The notes under the pieces were generated by a model. That model did not search any database. It was given only the letters and a program-made list of their open reading frames with translations, and had not been told where the DNA came from. Shown one piece after another: positions 9,424-36,987 of a DNA stretch of 64,000 nt. The DNA comes from Mytilus edulis. Its lineage: Eukaryota. The position numbers and the translations under genes are program-made. Position 1 is the stretch's first letter. Every line of letters starts with the position of its first letter. The stretch is from positions 12,958,001-13,022,000 of the forward strand of contig NC_092348.1 of assembly GCF_963676685.1 (NCBI RefSeq), read 5' to 3'.

Positions 9424-9556
9424 ATAGAAACCATAACCGTCTACACTTAACTACTGATAGAAACCATAACCGTCTACACTTAACTACTGATAGAAACCAT
9501 AACCGTCTACACTTAACTACTGATAGAAACCATAACCGTCTACACTTAACTACTGA
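9424..9556. repeat. Minisatellite, 33-bp unit x4
   Basis: atagaaaccataaccgtctacacttaactactg repeated four times, identical. Confidence 0.95.
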
Positions 9557-14748: not shown

Positions 14749-17700
14749 TCATTTTGGATCAGTAAGAACGAGAGGAATGAGTTCAACAATTGGTCTTATG
14801 AATGAACTGGGTTTGTCGTCTCTAATAGTTCGAATTTCCACTTTTCGGATTTTCATGTCGGCACTGGGGAAAACTTTTGTTACTATTGCCATCGGCCACT
14901 GTGGTCTTGGTAACTCTTTGTCCCTCATGAGAACTATGTCTCCTATATTTAAGTCCTTTATCGGCAATTCCCACTTTTTCCTTACTTGAAGTGTATGTAA
15001 ATATTCTTTATTCCATTTTGACCAGAATTCATCTGCGAGTCCTTGAACCATCTTCCACTGACTACGTAGCATGTCCTTAGTTCCAAATTGTAGCATAGTT
15101 TGTTCATCCTGTCCTTTCTTGTGTGTTAAGAGCATAGACGGAGATAATACTTCCGGGTTATCCGGGTCAGTAGAGACAGATACTAACGGCCTTGAATTCA
15201 CAATAGCACTGACCTCTGCCATTAGAGTAACTAAAATTTCATGTGTGAGTCTATTTTTCTCACGAATGAGCATGCAATCTAAAATCCTTCTGCTTAAACC
15301 TATCATCCTTTCCCATGATCCACCAAAATGTGAAGCATGCGGAGGGTTGAATTTCCATATAGTTCCGTATTGTGATAGCATTATATCAACAGTGCCCTTT
15401 TCAATGAATTCAGCTGTGATTCCTAAATCTTGTATTGCACCAACAAAATTTGTTCCTCTATCTGATCAAATAAGTTTAACAGATCCTCTGATAGCAATGA
15501 AACGACGATATGCATTGATAAAACTGGCGCTACTCATTTCTTCTATGACTTCAATATGTATCGCTCTTGAAACCAAACATGTGAATAATATTGCCCATCT
15601 TTTCTGATTGATTGATGAGCCTCTAGTTTTTCTATGGATGATTTGGTATGGTCCAAAAGTATCGATTCCCACAAAGGTAAAGGGAGGTCCTGGAGTGAGT
15701 CTATCTTCCGGAAGGTCAGACATCTTTTGTACTTTAAACTGACCTCGCAATTTCTTACATGTGACACATTGTCTGATGATTGTAGAAACTAGCCTTTTAC
15801 TGCCTATAACCCAAAAGCCTCCTGAACACAAGGCTCCTTCAGTCATGTGTCTGCCTTGATGACATGTCAATTCATGATAGTGACGCGTCAGTAACACAGC
15901 TAAATGATGTTTCTTTGGAATAATTATTGGCTGAAGATGTAGCTCAACAGTTTTTGCATGTCGTATACGTCCACCAACTCTAAGAATATTATGTTTGTCT
16001 AACACAGGTGAAAGCGACAATAAATTTGACGTAGGAAGTAACTGACCAACGGAACTAATTGCATTGATATCGTTTGAAAATGCCTCTGCTTGCACTGTTT
16101 TGATGATAAATTGTTCCACTTCTTGTCGAGAAGGTGGACTCTCTTGATGTAACTTTCTAATAAAGGCTTTAAGAAACTGAATAGCTCTCACTAGACTTTT
16201 CCAAGATGCAAGTCGCGAAAACCTGCTTGACAATCCTACCTCCTCATTAATGTCAGTTTTATTAGTAACTACAGACGGACGGACTTCTTTATCATCATTT
16301 GGATCGACAAGTGGATACATTTGTTTTCCAATATCTGAATCTTGACTCAAGAATGTTGGTCCCTGCAGGTAGACTGAACTGGGTAAATCTACAGTATTAA
16401 GGCTTCTTGTTGCTACATCTGCTGGATTCAGATCAGTTGAAATGTAGCTCCATTGGCTAGGAGAACTTGATGTTCTTATTCGGTTAACTCGGTTGCTCAC
16501 ATAAACATAAAATCTACGTGTTTCATTAGTTAAGTAACCTAAAACGACCTTACTGTCAGTATAAAAATGAAAACAAGTCGAGTCTAATTTGAGGTGTTCT
16601 TTCAAAGTATCTGCAATCTCGACGGAAAGGACAGCTGCACATAACTCTAAACGCGGAATTGTGTGGCCGTGTACTGGCGACACTTTAGCTTTGCCCATCA
16701 GAAAGGAGACTTCACTTTTATTCTCACCAAACAATTTCAAATAAGCCACAGATGCTATCGCGTCCTTTGACGCATCACTGAATACATGAACCTCCAAATG
16801 TGTAGAGTTTAAAAATGATATATCTGAATATCTACGTGGTATTTGTAAGTTTTGAAGATGAACCAATGAGGATACCCAATTTTCCCATCTTAATTTCAAA
16901 TGATCAGGGAGATCTTCATCCCAATTTGCAGGTCCAGATTCTGACATCATCTCTCGGAGAATTAGTTTTCCATTCATTGTAATTGGAGACGCAAACCCAA
17001 TAGGGTCAAATATGCTATTAATGACCGACAATGCACCTCTGCGAGTGTACGGCTTTTTCTCTGAAGACACTTTGAATGTAAATTGATCGACAGAAATGTC
17101 CCATGAAAGTCCTAAGCTGCGTTGTACAGGAGGAGTTTCAGATCCAAGGTCCAGGTCCTTGAGGTCCGAAGATAAGTCTTCTGATGGAAAGCTTTGAAGA
17201 ACGGCTTTACTATTCGACACAAATTTATGGAGTCGCAATCCACCACCATCTACAAGAGCCTTTTGAGTTCGCTTCATAAGGTCAACTGCGGACTCAACAT
17301 CTGGGCATGACATCAACCCATCATCAACATAAAAGTTGTTATAAACAAAGTCCTGAATGTCATTATCTGCATTTTGCACTGCTCTCCTTAAACAATATGT
17401 GGCAACAGAGGGAGAAGGGCTATTCCCAAAAACATGTACAGTCATTCTGTAATCAATAAGAGGGCGATGAACTTCATTGTTTTCATGCCATACAAAACGC
17501 AAATAGTCTCTATGTGAATCTGTTACCTTAAAGTTGTAAAACATTTGTTCTACGTCTGCTGTCACAGCTACAGCCTCTTTACGGAATCTAAGTAAAACAC
17601 CTAATAAATTGTTTGTTAGATCTGGACCTTTTATTAAGACATCATTCAATGAAGTTCCGCTAAACTTAGCTGACGAATCAAAAACAATTCTCACTTTTCC

Positions 17701-20235
17701 AGGTTTTTTTGGATGATATACCCCAAAAAAGGGAAGATACCAACATTCATTTCCTATGGGTAGATTTGGTGCCTTCTCAGCATGTTTGTTCACAAACATC
17801 TTATTCATGAATTCAAGTATATGCTCTTTTTTGTTAGGGTTCATGCGAAGACTACGTTCCAACGAATTAACTCTCTGCACTGCTTGTACTCTATTATTAG
17901 GCAACACAGGTCTGTCTTTGCGAAACGGAAGAGGTGCAGTCCACCGATTATCTGACCCTTGTTTCACTTTAGAATCCATCAATTCTATAAATAGTTTGTC
18001 CTCGATTGAAGGTCCAATAGTTTCATCGTAAGGTGTTCTCTCAAAGATAAATTCAGGTTTTACAGTAAAAGCATTTGCACAAGGTTGAAAATGAGAGGTG
18101 CGTCCATCTGGCAAAATAAAAGTTTTGTTTACAGTTACAGTTTCAGTTCGATGAATCTGACCGAGACAAGATTCTCCTACGATCACCCACCCTAATGGCA
18201 ACTTTTGAGCATAGGGCAAGTTGTCACCTCCCAAGCGTTGATCAAGAACGTGATGGGCTTGAATCACATCTCTACCAATAAGTAATTCAATTTTGATATT
18301 CTGGTCAATGGGTGGTATGTGCGACGCTATGTTGTTAAGATGATCATGACTAGCTGCCACTTCTGGTGATGGTATCTCATCACGGTTGTTTGGTATGTCG
18401 TTGCATTCAATTAGTGATGGAATGTTTATAGAAGTACTATGATCTAACGCTTCAATTGTATAATGTCTTGCTACTCTACCCATTGTAGATACTTTGCCTG
18501 AGCATGATGCTAATGTAAAATTTATATGTTCAGCATTCTCATTAAATATATCGAAAAACTTTGATGTACCTAATGAATGAGTACTTTGATCATCTATGAT
18601 TGCATATACTTTCTGAGCCATGTGTGTTTTATTTTTTGGATAAACATAAATTGGCAAAATCTTAGCACAAGACTTGCTACTACTTAACGGATTTCCACAA
18701 ATCTTTGTACAAATAGCTGATACATGTGATAGGTTATTAAGCTCCCCTTCGTGAATCTTCTCACTTTCACAGTCATTTACAGATTGAGAGCCGTTATATG
18801 GATCTATGTTTTGGTCTTGTTGGTAAATGTGTAAAGCTGTTGGATGATTTGAACTTTTACAAATATTACAATGTATGTTTTCTCTACAGCTTCTTTGTAA
18901 ATGTTTCTGAAGACTGCAGCAACGAAAGCAAAGCCTGTTTTTCTTTAACAAGTCCATACGTTCAGTCATTGGCTTTTGACGGAAAGCTCTACATTCATTG
19001 AGATCGTGATTTGTGCCATGAATAGGACAAACTTGCTTTTCATCTATTGTGTATACATCAGTTTTTCTAGTAGATACACGCAAATTAGATTGCATACTAG
19101 CAGGATTAGAAGTTTTATTTGTCTGCGGAGCAAACTGAAAACTCGGATCTGTACGCCATTTTGCCATGTCATAAGTAAAGTCAACAAAGAATGAGAATGG
19201 CGGGTACAACATATTGTGCCTTTTCTTGTATTTAATAGCTTCTGTTGACCATTTTTCCTGTAAGTTATGAGGAAGACAATTTACGATCTGATTAACGCCA
19301 GTTGAGGAGTCATAATAAGCGAGAACTTGTGAATATTGTGGATTGTTTTTAACAAATTGGATTTCACATAATATGTCATATAGTTCATACAGGCGTTCAT
19401 AATCTTTGGCAGTATTGCTTAACTTCGGAAAGTTAGCAAGTTTGGTTTTTAAGCATTGCTCAATCAATTCTGGACTTCCATACCGAACATCCAATCGGTC
19501 CCAAATTTTGTGTAAACCACCAACATGATCACTAGCACTGGCAGCTTTGATACTTTCTGCTTGTCTTGCTGAATCTGGACCAAGCCATTTTATGAGAAGA
19601 TCCAACTCTTCTGAAGGAGTCACACTAAGTTCTTTCATAACATCTTTAAATGTCTCTTTCCAAGATAGGAACTGAAATGGGCTATCATTGTATTTGATAA
19701 GTCGTGATAAAACAATATCCTTCCGAGCCATCATCTTTGTGATCAAATTACACAGTTCCATTTGTGAATTATTGTTGTTAACATTAGGAGGCACATATGG
19801 TGTCGATGTATTTGCATATGCGCTAAGTTGTGGAGATTGCTTTTCTGGTGTATTCACTATTGCAATTGGTTTTGTATCTAGTATATGTAGATTTTGAACA
19901 TATTCTTTTGTTCGTTCTTTTTGAAATTCAGATACAGAGTCTAGATCGTCATCCTCTCCTACCATGGACTCATTTTCCAATATCCTGATCTCTGACTCCA
20001 ACACCTCAGTCTCTTCTTTAATCTGAAGGATACTTAATTCTGCCTCTAGGGCAGCCTTTTGTCTTATAAGACTAGCCTGTTTTGCACTGTATTTAACCTT
20101 CGTCTCTAATTGTGCTTTTTTTCTTAATATATCAGATTTACTTGATAAGTGACTGTGATTTGAAACTGAACGACTCGGTTTTATCTGAGTGAAGTCTATC
20201 TGTTCATGCTGTTTTAGTTCTCGGTAGGTTGCCAT
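14749..20235 (-). pseudogene. BEL/Pao Gag-Pol polyprotein (~1828 codons) with one in-frame TGA at 15466-15468
   Basis: Three Gag Cys/His knuckles (CPIH...C, CFRCC...H...C, CNIC...H...H), protease AIIDDQS, RT FYVDD, RNase H FSDAS and TIPRLELCAA, integrase HHCC, GIDTFGP, *SDRGTNF and GGSWERM. ORFs 15466-20262 and 14749-15381 are in the same frame. Confidence 0.93.
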
Positions 20236-20262
20236 TGTCACAACTGGTCGAAGCTTTTTCAC

Positions 20263-21949: not shown

Positions 21950-24900
21950 ATCTTGTCAGCTTTTACTTTTGGTGAAAATGGCATATCTATTGTCTTTTTT
22001 AGGAAGAGTTATAACCCCTTATTGAAGGAAGTGTCTTATATTCGCTCTTGAAATTATCTAGAATTGTAACATTTCCAGAGGAGTATTTTCTTTGGAAATT
22101 TGTGTATGTGGAAAATATGAGCTGACTGTAAGTGAACGTACATTTTCTTTACTTGCTCACGAAAGTTGCTTTTGCATCTTGTATAATAAGTTTCTTTACA
22201 TTTTCGTAAAACAACTCACAACACAACGTCTACTCACAACACCATATAGCCAGAGTACCGTTGTATTAACCTCCGGGCGAACGGTTCATCGAAGTTGGAC
22301 TTTGGACTTTACGCATTAAGTGTTCACCGACAATGAGTGCTAAAGATCAGATTGGTCGTTTTGATCTGCCGCCTAGGGAACAAGCACAACTTTTGTCTGC
22401 GGTAAATATGATAAAGGATAGACACCTTATTAAGGTTCAAAATCTCTCTATGGCAGAGCTTCGAGCTTTTAATTAAACATTTCCATAAAAAATAATGATA
22501 AATGAGATAAAAGCTTTATTACCAGACTTTAGTGATAGTATTATATCAGAAGCCTGTCACTGCGTATCTAACGCATTAAACAACGAAAGTCAAAAGGTCT
22601 TGGGTGAATTAAAACGTAGTCGCAAGCAAGTTCCAATATCAACCAAAGTTAGCCGAGAACAAGACATTACTGTACCTAAGCTAGTAACAACAGCCAATGA
22701 TGACCTAGAAAATCAAATACATAATGATCCATCTGACTCGTTGGTTAACCTCTGTCTCACGCAAAATGAACCGATAGACAATTGCGAAAATGACGTGACC
22801 AACGCTACTGATTCGGAAAATCTAGACACCAGCCTTACAGCTCTGACAGAAGCCGTACAAACTTCACAAAGCATGGAAATAAGTCATTGCATCGACAAAT
22901 CAGGTGACTGTGGCCGACTCACCTTTGCCAAGATCGAATAAAACTCAAAAGCCTATCAAATCTAGCGGAGCCGACGAAATGGCTAAATGCATTTGTAACG
23001 CTAATAAAAGAGGCGATATGATACGTTTAACGCGTTAAATATATTGATTTCTTTACGCGTTAAAATCTTGTTTTAACGCGTTAAAACTGTATTTATAGCG
23101 TTAAATGTGATTTTATCGCGTTAAATGTTAACGTGAACGCGTTACTTTATCGAGTTTTGACATGATCGGCCTTTCATAGACTGGTGCCGAGATTGGTTTC
23201 ATGAGAAATGCATGAACATAAAAAAGAACGAAAAGATTGGTTTCTGGGTTTGCTCGGTTTGTAGGGACATCCCGATGTCGATCAAACGTATCGAGTAACA
23301 GTCAAACTCTGTAATTTTGAAAAATATGGACATGATCCGTGACGTAGCTTCCAGAATTACGCAGATACATGAACTGCAAGCAGAGAAGGACCACCTTCGG
23401 ACTCTTTTTAACAAGTTAAGTACATCCGAAGTTTCGCCTTTTTCTAAGAGTGCTAGCCGGCGTAAAAATAAATCCAGAAAGAAAAAAAAACTGCTTCGAA
23501 AGTCCCCGAAAAGACTATTGACGAGGATGTTATGAGTCGATTCAACAGTATTCTGACCACAGAACATGTGAGTGACAATGAGGACCTAGTGGAGATCTCC
23601 TGCGACGACCAACCTGGTTCATCGCAATCATCCAGATCGCTCCAAAGGAATCAAAAAGATCTACAGGAAATTTACTGATGGGTAGTTTAATTATACGGGA
23701 TATTAACAAGAACAAATTTTTCCTAGATACGAATCCTATATGTGTCCGTGGAGATAAAACCAACGATATTTCTGAACGTCTATTGGCGCTTCCTAAAGAT
23801 ACTGAGCTAAAACATTATTATTCAAGTTGGTAGTAATTAGTGTTGTGGCTCCAACTTTGAAAATGACACATTTAACGAAGACTATAAAATACTTGTGGCA
23901 TTCAAGGTAAGTGTTGGAAACTGCTGAAATCACTTTACAGTAATGTATCAAACAAAGTTTTGTTTGGTGATTGTGAAACAGACTATCAAGAATTTGGCTT
24001 GAAACAAGGTTATGTCTTGTCTCCAGCTCTTTTCTCTGTTCTAATGAATGACCTCGTAAGTATGCTCGAAGCCAATAATTTTGGTGCCGAACTATCCTCA
24101 CAACTAGTGTATTGCCTTTTAGTTGCTGATGTTGTAGTCCTTATCAGGAAGTCCGAGGCGGAACTACATCGTCTGCTTGATATAACAGCTAATTTTGCTT
24201 CAAAGTGGTATCTAAAATTTAACCAAAACAAATCCAAGGTTATGATAATAGGCAAGCGTTGAGATATTGATAAGAAGTGGCAATTAGGTAACCTGCTCCT
24301 GGAGGAAGCCAATGAATACAAATATCTCGGTGTTTATTTTACCCGTTCATTGACTTTTGCCTACCAAATAAATTGTTACTTAAAAGATAACTTCGAGCAC
24401 AAGCTCAATTATGTGATAAAGTTGCTAAATGAGCATGGATCTTTCAATCGCATATCCTTCGGAGATGCCATCTGGAACTCGGTAATACGGCCATCTATCG
24501 CACACGGTTGTGCTGCATGGCTGCCGTCGTCAGCTTCAGGCAAAAAAATTCTTAAAAATTGGCAATATAAATCGGCGAAATTCATTTTTTTGTACTAATT
24601 GAATATCCCTAAGTCGGCTCTGTTCGTAGATTTGGGTTGGGAACCGATAAATGATTTCCTAGACAGACAAAGGGTGTCTTATTTTGCTAGATTTCATGAC
24701 CTAGATAAGAATAGATGATGTCGAATAATATTTCACGAGCTTAAGGGCTTAACGCTATATCGAGGATGGGGATATCCCCAGTATATGAAAAATGTGTTTA
24801 ATTCTGTTGGTCTTGATCATTTTTACAACTCAAATGTTAACCTGAATATTTTCAAACAGTTTTTTGGAAGGTTTGTTCGTGAAAAATAATTTCAAGTTAT

Positions 24901-25648
24901 AAGAAATAAAAGCAGTCTTAATACGTTCTCCAAATTCAACCTTTCGTCTGGTAGACAGCCTTATTTGTCAAACTTGCTCGATTTTAAGTTTGCAAGGTTA
25001 AAATTGTTAGCACGAACAAATTGCCTACCCATATATCAAGTTTTGTATAGAATGAATATGTCCGAGACTACCATTTGTCAAATGTGTTCATGCAAATCTG
25101 AGGAGTCCGTGGAACATGTCGTTCTCGGATGTTCTGAATATTCTCCTAAACCATGTATACGAAGTTAGTATTTTCCCGATATAAATGAGTACCTAAGTAC
25201 TAACTTCCCCGCCTTTTGCTTCACAGAGTTACCGTCCTACGAAAAAATAAACATACTGCTAGGTGAATGTTTTTATAAGGTTGATCCAAATGTTTGTAAA
25301 CATGTTGACACTTTTAGTAAAAAGATGCTGAGTGAAATGTACACTTACAGATCTTCAATTTTAGAAGATTAAGCTAACTGTGATTTACGTGTGCAGATAT
25401 CAGAAGGCAGCTTAATCGGTGTGATCTCTAAATGTTGAGATTTTATATTAATATATAATGTTGTTATGTTTTACATGAATGTTGACTTGTTTTAAAAGAG
25501 AATTAATTTTTAACTTTGATATTGTCCTATGTGTATTTTATTTAATTGTAAATTATTCATTGTATATGCTCTTAGACGCATTTGTGGGTACCCTGCCTAC
25601 AAGTGCCCCGTTGTAAAGGGGTAGTTTCTTAATAAATATATATATATA
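21950..25648 (+). mobile_element. Decayed, internally deleted non-LTR retrotransposon (CR1/L2-group-like)
   Basis: ORF1 remnants from ATG 22333 with a PHD finger (CICN...WCRDWFHEKC...WVCSVC) and an SGNH/esterase-like segment (MGSLIIRDI...CVRG...IQVGSN). These join directly to the RT C-terminal half (GLKQGYVLSPALFS, degenerate ADD motif, LKFNQNKSKVM, YKYLGV) and a C-terminal CQMC...ESVEHVVLGC finger. 3' stem-loop, AATAAA and (TA)n tail. Many stops and frameshifts; boundaries approximate. Confidence 0.8.
23025..23180. repeat. Insertion of short palindromic repeats (ttaacgcgttaa) splitting the LINE PHD finger
   Basis: About six acgcgttaa-like palindromes interrupt the DMIR / WCRDWFH coding continuity. 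Confidence 0.7.
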
Positions 25649-27548
25649 TAACATTGTTGGGTTGATGTTTAGACGAGTTGTATATACATTATGTACACAG
25701 CCATGTATCACCATCATTGATGGCGATCCGATGGACACATCTGTTGTAGGGTTGTCACTGACTCAGACGTACTTATGAATATAATTATTTTCTGTGACTG
25801 TATCTTACATTAATTTGTAGGATCCTTTACTATAGATAATTTAGCTGATCTGTAACAATAACATCTTCATGCCTTATATATATCATGTACTGCAGTACGC
25901 CGCTAGATTAAAACTGACGTGGAAAGGTAACACACGGCCAGCGAAAGCTCTATTTTTTAGAGCCCAGGTGGTCGTGTGGTCTAGCGGGACGGCTGCAGTG
26001 CAGGCGATTTGGTGTCACGATATCACAGTAGCATGGGTTCGAATCCCGGCGAGGGAAGAACCAAAAATTTGCGAAAGCAAATTTACAGATCTAACATTGT
26101 TGGGTTGATGTTTAGACGAGTTGTATATACATTATGTACACAGCCATGTATCACCATCATTGATGGTGATCCGATGGACACATCTGTTGTAGGGTTGTCA
26201 CTGACTCAGACGTACTTTTGAATATTATTATTTTCTGTGACTGTATCTTACATTAATTTGTAGGATCCTTTACTATAGATAATTTAGCTGATCTGTAACA
26301 ATAACATCTTCATGCCTTATATATATCATGTACTGCAGTACGCCGCTAGATTAAAACTGACGTGGAAAGGTAACACACGGCCAGCGAAAGCTCTATTTTT
26401 AAGAGCCCAGGTGGTCGTGTGGTCTAGCGGGACGGCTGCAGTGCAGGCGATTTGGTGTCACGATATCACAGTAGCATGGGTTCGAATCCCGGCGAGGGAA
26501 GAACCAAAAATTTGCGAAAGCAAATTTACAGATCTAACATTGTTGGGTTGATGTTTAGACGAGTTGTATATACATTATGTACACAGCCATGTATCACCAT
26601 CATTGATGGTGATCCGATGGACACATCTGTTGTAGGGTTGTCACTGACTCAGACGTACTTTTGAATATTATTATTTTCTGTGACTGTATCTTACATTAAT
26701 TTGTAGGATCCTTTACTATAGATAATTTAGCTGATCTGTAACAATAACATCTTCATGCCTTATATATATCATGTACTGCAGTACGCCGCTAGATTAAAAC
26801 TGACGTGGAAAGGTAACACACGGCCAGCGAAAGCTCTATTTTTAAGAGCCCAGGTGGTCGTGTGGTCTAGCGGGACGGCTGCAGTGCAGGCGATTTGGTG
26901 TCACGATATCACAGTAGCATGGGTTCGAATCCCGGCGAGGGAAGAACCAAAAATTTGCGAAAGCAAATTTACAGATCTAACATTGTTGGGTTGATGTTTA
27001 GACGAGTTGTATATACATTATGTACACAGCCATGTATCACCATCATTGATGGCGATCCGATGGACACATCTGTTGTAGGGTTGTCACTGACTCAGACGTA
27101 CTTATGAATATAATTATTTTCTGTGACTGTATCTTACATTAATTTGTAGGATCCTTTACTATAGATAATTTAGCTGATCTGTAACAATAACATCTTCATG
27201 CCTTATATATATCATGTACTGCAGTACGCCGCTAGATTAAAACTGACGTGGAAAGGTAACACACGGCCAGCGAAAGCTCTATTTTTAAGAGCCCAGGTGG
27301 TCGTGTGGTCTAGCGGGACGGCTGCAGTGCAGGCGATTTGGTGTCACGATATCACAGTAGCATGGGTTCGAATCCCGGCGAGGGAAGAACCAAAAATTTG
27401 CGAAAGCAAATTTACAGATCTAACATTGTTGGGTTGATGTTTAGACGAGTTGTATATACATTATGTACACAGCCATGTATCACCATCATTGATGGCGATC
27501 CGATGGACACATCTGTTGTAGGGTTGTCACTGACTCAGACGTACTTAT
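25649..27548 (+). repeat. Tandem array of a 443-bp unit (4 units + 128 bp) flanked by (TA)n
   Basis: Unit starts taacattgttggg at 25649, 26092, 26535, 26978 and 27421; about 99% identical; (TA)n on both sides. Confidence 0.98.
25959..26400 (+). ncRNA. Putative ~440-nt structured Pol III RNA with tRNA-like head (further copies 26402-26843, 26845-27286; partial 27288-27548)
   Basis: A-box-like TGGTCGTGTGG (25969-25979), perfect B-box GGTTCGAATCC (26036-26046), T5 run at 26396-26400, extensive 5'/3' complementarity with G-U pairs. Confidence 0.55.
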
Positions 27549-27829
27549 ATATATATATATGTATATATTAGTTCTGTTACATAGCATTTCTAGAGTCGGG
27601 GTAATTTAGAGCCGACTGACTACTATATATATGTAGCTCTTTGTTCATTGTTGAAAACTGTATGTATTAACATAATAGATCTATAATTAACCAAGCAGTG
27701 TCATAATAATACTTATGATAAACATTTGCATTTTTGTTATTATGATCTTTTTTCATAATGCAAATAATATCACAATAAGATATTAATTTGGTTCTTAACG
27801 CTTTATTTCGTTAACGGAAAACCGTAACG

Positions 27830-34324: not shown

Positions 34325-34716
34325 TCAAAGGTACCAGGCTTCAAATTTAATATGCCAGACGCGCGTTTCGTCTAAACAAGACTCATCAGTGACACTCAGA
34401 TCAAAATAGTTTTAAAGCCAAAGCAGTACAAAGTTGAAGAGCATTGAGGACCTACAATTCCGAAAAGTTATGCCAAATACGTCTAAGGTAATCTATGCCC
34501 GGGATAAGAAAATCCTTAGTATTTAGAAAAAATCATAATTTTGTAAACAGGAAATTTATCATTTGACCATATTATTAATTTTCATGTCAACACCGAAGTG
34601 CTGACTACTGGGCTGGTGATACCCTCGGGGACGAAACGTTCACCAACAGTGGCATCGACCCAGTCCAGTAGTGTAAACACTCAATAGAGACATGCAGATG
34701 AATCAAAGGTACCAGG
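34325..34716 (-). mobile_element. Retrozyme-like repeat (family 1), complete ~378-bp monomer with intact hammerhead
   Basis: tcaaaggtaccagg recurs at 34325 and 34703 (period 378). Contains the hammerhead at 34352-34395. Confidence 0.8.
34352..34395 (-). ncRNA. Type I hammerhead ribozyme
   Basis: Minus strand: gtgtca-CTGATGA-gtct tgttt agac-GAAA-cgcgcg-TC^-tggcat. Intact core, stems I and II, palindromic stem III, GUC cleavage triplet. Confidence 0.85.
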
Positions 34717-36694: not shown

Positions 36695-36987
36695 ACATGT
36701 AATTCGTCAGTACGAACATCGATATAACCTTGTAAATGTTTATTTCGAACAACGATATAACCTTGTAATTGTTTAATTCGAACATCGATATAACCTTGTA
36801 ATAGTTAAATTCGAACATCGATGTAACCTTGTAATTGTTTAGTTCAAACATCGATGTAACCGTGTAATTGTTCAGTTCAATCATCGATGTAACCGTTTAA
36901 TTGTTTAATTCGAACACCGATATAACCTTGTAATGGTTTAATTCGAACATAGATGTAACCTTGTAATCGTTCAGTTCGAACATCGAT
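36695..36987. repeat. Minisatellite, 33-bp unit x ~9
   Basis: ttcgaacatcgat(a/g)taaccttgtaattgtttaa repeated with substitutions. Confidence 0.9.

Follow-up and report, generated by a model that had tools for sequence, protein, structure and literature searches.

What does a tRNA-like RNA polymerase III (Pol III) promoter do in the middle of a tandem repeat? The question is raised by a 64,000-nt stretch of the Mytilus edulis genome (NC_092348.1, positions 12,958,001 to 13,022,000; hereafter, the window), in which a short array of 443-bp units carries such a module in every complete unit, directly behind a run of T residues. A preliminary description had proposed that promoter and T-run together yield one unit-length RNA. 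We put at roughly 55% the probability of a different reading, namely, that the module is the 5′ head of a tRNA-derived, non-autonomous retroelement resembling a short interspersed nuclear element (SINE), embedded in a 441–443-bp unit and moved via RNA, with a Penelope-like element as the likeliest mobilizer. The family joins three things that are usually separate: tRNA-derived SINEs, dispersed short satellites, and the tandem and inverted insertion style of Penelope-like elements. If the mobilizer is indeed Penelope-like, such elements would have in this family a non-autonomous partner headed by a Pol III module, and bivalves would have a concrete route from SINE to mobile satellite.

The 443-bp period is repeated 4.3 times with 99% matches at 25649–27555 (Tandem Repeats Finder, TRF), and the array combines two unit variants as an A-B-B-A-A mosaic. 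Every complete unit shows the same succession: the T-run, then GAGCCCAGGTGGTCGTGTGGTCTAGCGG with two overlapping A-box-like motifs, then a perfect B box 48 nt further on. In unit 1, GAGCCCAGGTGGTCGTGTGGTCTAGCGG starts at 25960, separated from the T6 run by a single A, and GGGTTCGAATCCC lies at 26035–26047. The joint pattern TGGTCTAGNGG N30–60 GGTTCGANNCC occurs four times in the window, exclusively in the array, compared with 0.00 expected from shuffles, and the B box alone occurs four times, compared with 0.06 expected. By sequence and by these counts, the T-run, the A-box-like motifs, and the B box are real in each of the four heads. The reported change from T6 to T5 in later units is likewise correct at all four positions, and the internal T4 runs pointed out earlier are present at 26216–26219 and 26231–26234. 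With a perfect B box and two motifs that each match the textbook A-box consensus TRGCNNAGTGG at 9 of 11 positions, the head has the boxes of a tRNA-derived SINE. It is not a tRNA gene, as had been stated: ARAGORN reported no tRNA genes in the window and 27 loci, and the Rfam tRNA covariance model gave no match at E ≤ 10, even with a 120-nt search space. Because neither method matched, the head is termed degenerate. The Leu/Ser (class II) assignment of the preliminary description is putative, and a likeness to tRNA-Glu is a further candidate. The genome's top tRNA matches were considered as the parent tRNA and rejected, being unrelated tandem tRNA gene arrays. These genuine tRNA genes (73 and 72 bits) lie in long tandem arrays at G000 C7:89824231-89851573, with a period of approximately 727 bp, and C10:19277731-19303881, where spacings of 439 and 1,085 bp alternate.

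The family was traced through a genome of 1.37 Gb in 14 large scaffolds. An exact 28-nt head sequence has 1,728 + 1,729 copies (approximately 3,460), compared with 0 for the control, and the family is spread over all chromosomes; the first 45.6 Mb of C1 hold 100 heads at approximately 78 loci, or roughly 2,300 loci when extrapolated to the whole genome. Three species carry the family. Divergence is 1.6% between arrays and 0.5% within them. The family is young; its unit arrangement is old, since head plus spacer is also present in relatives that are 74–81% identical. What moves, at its simplest, is a tRNA-headed SINE of approximately 175 nt that runs from unit position 310 to unit position 39, plus (TA)n; the 443-bp unit adds to this SINE a 270-nt spacer, with its end predicted to pair with the head.

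The manner of insertion can be read from the ends of the copies. The unit was mapped onto 24 array loci and 20 unselected single-head loci. In head orientation, 3′ ends recur at unit positions 34–51, at an internal TATATA, as in 17 of the 20 unselected single-head loci; rarer 3′ ends lie at approximately 123–126 (ACTTAT, the case of the window array), at approximately 140, and at 233–240. A (TA)n tract follows the 3′ end in nearly all copies, giving the microsatellite 3′ end of a SINE, and most insertions are flanked by (TA)n on both sides, which makes target-site duplications unreadable. The 5′ ends range widely, between unit positions 15 and 424, frequently with TA microhomology, and those at 203–222 form a diffuse scatter with such microhomology and no sharp start. 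Every array ends at unit positions 38–47 or 126, followed by (TA)n, in the + orientation, and no mapped array shows the reverse, in which the 5′ end would be constant and the 3′ end would vary. The + strand alone serves as the template. Because only this strand is copied, we infer that RNA is the template and that reverse transcription is target-primed at (TA)n, on the internal UAUAUA. Head-to-head inverted pairs were found at loci L004, L007, L021, L028, L035, L039, L040, L044, L045, and L046, and in many head-to-head array pairs both outer ends lie at the TATATA site (e.g., L044, L045, L021, and L046).

In the mechanism that we propose, a nicked (TA)n target would prime reverse transcriptase on the internal UAUAUA of the RNA. 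An RNA started at the head (5′ end at G310–G312, probably a Pol III start from the A and B boxes) would yield the solos of approximately 175 nt, and a long multi-unit + RNA would yield arrays such as that of the window; alternatively, arrays would arise by repeated copying of a unit-length RNA. The mobilizer would be a Penelope-like element, the likeliest candidate because (TA)n targeting is combined with partial tandems, 5′ truncation, and inverted 5′ copies. Insertion anatomy suggests this assignment: the complex insertions of Penelope-like elements are seen here as 5′ truncation, head-to-tail partial tandems, and an adjacent inverted 5′-truncated copy, and their microsatellite insertion bias appears as (TA)n, as in Naiads. 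At L042 (1400–3200), a 5′-truncated canonical Penelope-like element (RVT_1 and C-terminal GIY-YIG) and a 443-bp-unit array of opposite orientation meet by their tails in a single (TA)n tract, and an inverted copy of its own 3′ untranslated region (UTR), holding a hammerhead-like motif CTGATGA...GAAA, lies upstream.

Among Penelope-like elements, Naiads are dominant in bivalves, prefer (TA)n, and lack a hammerhead, and their insertions show 5′ truncation, partial tandems, and an inverted 5′-truncated copy (PMC8557442). The present family shares with Naiad and Chlamys elements the (TA)n preference, strong 5′ truncation, head-to-tail partial tandems, the inverted copy, and the lack of a canonical hammerhead (PMC8557442). 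Internal initiation of reverse transcription, demonstrated in vitro for a Penelope-like element (PMC11167929), would be a further common trait. The family differs from Penelope-like elements in that its head is a tRNA-type Pol III module and in having no 3′ similarity to the one autonomous element compared.

The role of the promoter bears on where copies start. Among the first 100 C1 heads, the upstream unit context is absent in 17; five of these are point variants of that context, and the 12 others start at G310, A311, or G312, directly after the T-run position. These 12 copies begin right after (TA)n or an inverted piece, with a (GA)n stutter in two and a snap-back head copy in one. In ten of them, the 3′ end falls at unit positions 34–51, giving (TA)n-tailed solos; in one, it falls at unit position 213; a second head is present in none. 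Genome-wide, (TA)3 within 0–6 nt of GAGCCC occurs at approximately 120–150 sites, whereas a control window 40 nt downstream gives approximately 41, of which approximately 25 share a junction at G350. Among genomic copies, 5′ ends cluster most strongly at G310–G312; the first A-box-like motif follows 10–12 nt downstream, a spacing typical of type-2 Pol III initiation. These fossil ends support a putative RNA 5′ end at the head, and, judged from sequence, Pol III initiation there would be consistent with them. The proposed Pol III module stands to this extent: a SINE-type A/B-box head lies on the transcribed strand, with 5′ ends at G310–312; what is not supported is that promoter plus T-run set the unit length. 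At L075, L081, and L082 (G000 C1:28.95, 43.11, and 43.19 Mb), head-started solos sit behind the (TA)n tail of one high-copy repeat (>1,000 candidates, 91–97% identity, ending ...CAATTTAGACTAAA(TA)n), a repeated nesting site.

Two stranded RNA-seq runs of 2026, mapped to one unit, gave 4,580 and 5,817 reads from approximately 6% of each run. In both, the first mate lies on the − strand 10–100 times more often than on the + strand, so that the RNA runs in the head's orientation (+). Over the unit, depth at this sampling ranges from 900 to 2,600, and coverage continues unbroken through the T-run, whose bin shows depths of 948 and 1,252, compared with 1,150–1,600 on the head side and 1,770–2,270 further upstream; + RNA thus crosses the run at approximately 75% of the neighboring depth. 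The run reads T7 (26395 A>T), with a G after it (26401 A>G), in 85% of RNA reads and T6 in approximately 12%, close to its share in DNA. No excess of read starts or ends was found anywhere on the unit in the two stranded runs, and the unit–unit joint (26534 to 26092) is spanned by 1,051 and 1,244 reads. The idea that promoter and T-run give one unit-length RNA is not supported for the RNA seen here, given this crossing, the lack of end pile-ups, and the more than 1,000 reads per run over the joint. Read-through of T7 argues against Pol III as the polymerase of the abundant RNA. RNA depth is approximately 1.5 times higher over 26212–26361 (unit positions 121–270) than over the rest and lowest at unit positions 286–315, again without read-end pile-ups.

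The same runs indicate which copies the RNA comes from. At unit position 38, 4–5% of RNA reads run into (TA)n, whereas an estimated 60% at least would be terminal in DNA; at the head start, foreign upstream sequence appears in 2–4% of RNA reads, whereas 12–17% of heads were counted as terminal in DNA. Given so few terminal-junction reads, the RNA pool consists of internal units, from long arrays or circles. Flank run-on is seen in 7–8% of reads, and the joint-spanning reads fit linear multimers and circles equally well. A third run, random-primed and unstranded, covers mostly the SINE part at low depth, with 63% of reads continuing into other sequence, which fits solos embedded in other transcripts. 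As the RNA is abundant, strand-specific, and structured, both the polymerase and the choice between circle and multimer are directly testable by standard RNA work.

Folding offers another role for the T-run. The + strand unit has a minimum free energy (MFE) of −145 kcal/mol (z −5.8), and the 5′ half of the head (unit positions 311–355), which includes both A-box-like motifs, forms one side of an interrupted hairpin with the T-run at its apex. This hairpin is kept in eight sequences, with 31 predicted pairs, five of them with changes on both sides (RNAalifold); older relatives make up six of the eight, and four of these share only 77–81% identity with one another. The loop is T/A-rich throughout, with T5 or more in some relatives only and TTCTATTAT, TATTATGTG, or TATTATAGT in others. 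Over 100 junctions of the young family, the run is T7 in 44, T6 in 9, T8 or longer in 9, T5 in 14, T4 in 15, and T3 or shorter or absent in 9; the CTATTTTTAA type of the window array is uncommon (2 of 100). Within any one array, the T-run type is uniform, and types differ between arrays. The minor-allele fraction at the run is 0.117, compared with 0.003–0.018 elsewhere; no other part of the unit varies nearly as much. The T-run thus falls short as a unit boundary: it is the unit's most variable site, is T4 or shorter or interrupted in 24 of 100 junctions, is gone from older relatives, and lies in a hairpin loop. It would instead be the U-rich loop of a conserved predicted hairpin rather than an efficient boundary of the abundant RNA. 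A candidate origin of the left arm as an inverted duplicate of the head was rejected as borderline, its score of 25 equaling the best shuffle.

Several points weigh against the retroelement reading and its promoter and mobilizer components. The samples cover a small number of loci. The fossils at G310–312 are also what cleavage in the hairpin loop would leave, and further 5′-end hot spots exist, such as G350. The library selection of the RNA runs is off record, so short non-polyadenylated Pol III RNAs may be under-represented, or missed if the libraries were poly(A)-selected; the data are compatible with linear multimers as well as circles and do not single out the polymerase behind the abundant RNA. 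An autonomous partner was not found: neither the neighboring long interspersed nuclear element (LINE) nor the one Penelope-like element compared has a 3′ UTR significantly similar to the unit. A (TA)n-tailed LINE family exists and could be the mobilizer instead. The unit is also without similarity to another (TA)n-tailed high-copy repeat. The G350 hot spot comprises approximately 25 insertions genome-wide with the identical 5′ junction TATATA, then GTGCAGGCGATT, at unit position 350, the base of the hairpin, and is possibly a reverse transcriptase stall site.

Of the alternatives, the model of the preliminary description survives best, although we consider it unlikely. In the extended form considered here, Pol III would transcribe from the head to the next T-run, and the unit-length RNA would be the replicative template, its segments 239–303 and 311–355 forming a panhandle on which reverse transcriptase hops from the 5′ end to a 3′ end and builds head-to-tail arrays. 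This model would explain why the 5′ ends at G310–312 lie directly behind the T-run, why none of the 12 head-started copies has a second head, why complementary termini are conserved, and why variability peaks at the unit–unit junction, whose T-run type is uniform within arrays and different between them; T5 or longer is present at 76 of 100 junctions. Nevertheless, intact T7 is crossed by the RNA without end pile-ups, T-run lengths in RNA mirror those in DNA with no ragged termination, and the run is missing from older relatives. Furthermore, the A-B-B-A-A mosaic does not fit one copied molecule, and the head-started copies stop at unit positions 34–51, away from the T-run.

Ranking below this, and doubtful in our view, is a retrozyme-like mobile RNA in which the tRNA-type head and the conserved hairpin replace the hammerhead. 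The unit would be set by Pol III start and stop or by loop cleavage, and the RNA, as a panhandle or circle, would be copied round by a Penelope-like reverse transcriptase into (TA)n arrays. Such copying round and round, if true, would write arrays directly into the genome.

Lower again stands a ribozyme-free analogue of retrozymes, which we regard as improbable. In this scheme, a host nuclease would cut multi-unit + precursors in the U-rich loop, RtcB-type ligation would close unit-length circular RNA, and rolling-circle reverse transcription of the circle at (TA)n sites would produce arrays. Abundant joint-spanning reads with undetectable RNA ends are what a circle would give, and the scheme is also in line with the low divergence within arrays (only 0.5%), the structured fold, and the 5′ ends at the loop; the strong depletion of array-terminal junctions in RNA relative to DNA points the same way, but long arrays alone could account for it. 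Yet the reads entering the flanks show that linear read-out of arrays exists, and the mosaic order speaks against the copying of a single circle. The unit has no hammerhead or other self-cleaving motif: no Rfam ribozyme match was obtained at E ≤ 10 on either strand, and no CUGANGA core was seen by eye. We know of no cleavage activity for such a hairpin loop.

The comparison with retrozymes is nonetheless instructive. Mussel retrozymes of similar size are circular RNAs of 350–390 nt with a hammerhead, ligated by RtcB (PMC7229834). With animal non-LTR (long terminal repeat) retrozymes (PMC7229834; bioRxiv 10.64898/2026.07.22.740005), the 443-bp family shares dispersed short tandem arrays in the range of 150–450-bp units, abundant RNA of one strand that crosses unit joints and has a structured fold, as well as a tie to Penelope-like elements. 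It lacks their defining type I hammerhead and is known from joint-spanning reads; for want of the hammerhead, it does not belong to the retrozymes, although its behavior is much alike. A type I hammerhead does occur in the window at 34352–34395 (−), scoring 37.3 bits against a gathering score of 34, within a retrozyme-like element of approximately 377 nt bounded by CCTGGTACCTTTGA repeats; this element has no significant similarity to the 443-bp unit. A tail motif, TGATG...TTTAGACGA, tried as kin of this hammerhead, was at chance level (score 28, shuffle mean 31).

A DNA-level satellite, in which a SINE and its flank were duplicated and spread by unequal crossing-over, extrachromosomal circular DNA, or a rolling-circle DNA transposon, leaving the head as a vestige, is highly improbable: Helentron-borne satellite-like short arrays are known in oysters (PMC7492417), arrays are uniform inside, and (TA)n tracts are fragile, but the + strand is always the template (3′ end fixed, 5′ end variable), Helitron-type termini are absent, and the twin-priming-like head-to-head pairs with both outer ends at TATATA, the strong strand specificity of the RNA, and the solos beginning at the head all speak against it.

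With the retroelement reading preferred, the family falls among the SINE-derived Pol III-type tandem repeats already known. Bivalve tRNA-derived SINEs occur in tandem-like and palindromic arrangements, including arrays of the form TSD1-(SINE)n-TSD1, where TSD denotes a target-site duplication (Martelossi et al. 2024, PMC11481361). Common to these structures and the present family are the tRNA-related A/B-box head, the microsatellite tail, direct arrays (of 4–15 units), and inverted forms (PMC11481361); here, by contrast, a 270-nt spacer belongs to the unit along with the SINE, arrays rank among the main forms, insertion is into (TA)n, and there is RNA evidence. No highly conserved SINE domain (HCD) was recognized in the family, although no search was aimed at it. 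SINE-derived satellites have been described (PMC10702118), and the newt PolIII/TAN repeat, as cited there, is approximately 360 bp long and tRNA-Glu-derived (Nagahashi et al. 1991, via PMC10702118). PolIII/TAN and the Xenopus OAX/satellite 1 repeat likewise carry a tRNA-like A/B-box module in each tandem unit. PolIII/TAN (in that secondary account) and OAX are described as satellites without a related SINE, whereas the family here also has solos and insertion signatures.

Table 1. Coordinates of the array, its parts, and the adjoining element (window positions).
Feature	Position	Strand	Basis
Array of 4.3 head-to-tail 443-bp units; 5′ truncation = unit position 1, 3′ end = unit position 126	25649–27546	+	TRF, BLAST map
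(TA)n at array 5′ junction; doubles as tail of upstream LINE remnant	25636–25650	.	sequence
(TA)n at array 3′ junction	27547–27568	.	sequence
T6 run, predicted hairpin loop, unit 1	25953–25958	+	sequence, folding
T5 runs, later units	26396–26400, 26839–26843, 27282–27286	+	sequence
tRNA-derived head, unit 1 (unit positions 311–405)	25959–26053	+	sequence, motif counts
Head, unit 2	26402–26496	+	sequence, A/B pattern
Head, unit 3	26845–26939	+	sequence, A/B pattern
Head, unit 4	27288–27382	+	sequence, A/B pattern
Overlapping A-box-like pair TGGTCGTGTGG, TGGTCTAGCGG; each 9/11 to TRGCNNAGTGG	25969–25987	+	by eye, pattern search
B box GGTTCGAATCC, perfect match to GGTTCGANNCC	26036–26046	+	pattern search
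Interrupted hairpin (predicted); left arm, unit positions 239–303, pairs with 5′ half of head, 311–355; T-run as apical loop	26330–26446	+	MFE fold, RNAalifold
Internal TATATA (unit positions 33–47), usual end of family insertions, putative reverse-transcription priming site	26124–26138	+	locus maps
Decayed non-LTR retrotransposon; RVT_1 E 1.7e-13, zf-RVT E 1.9e-6	23960–25635	+	domain search

The window array starts exactly in the (TA)n tail (to 25650) of the decayed non-LTR retrotransposon, which is its insertion site. Further upstream, a 1,598-aa open frame at 15466–20262 (−) looks, by eye, like the gag-pol of a BEL/Pao-type LTR retrotransposon, with putative protease, reverse transcriptase, RNase H, and integrase zinc finger. 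Unrelated 33-bp tandem repeats lie at 9424–9556 (4.0 copies, 100% matches) and 36713–36987 (8.3 copies, 87% matches).

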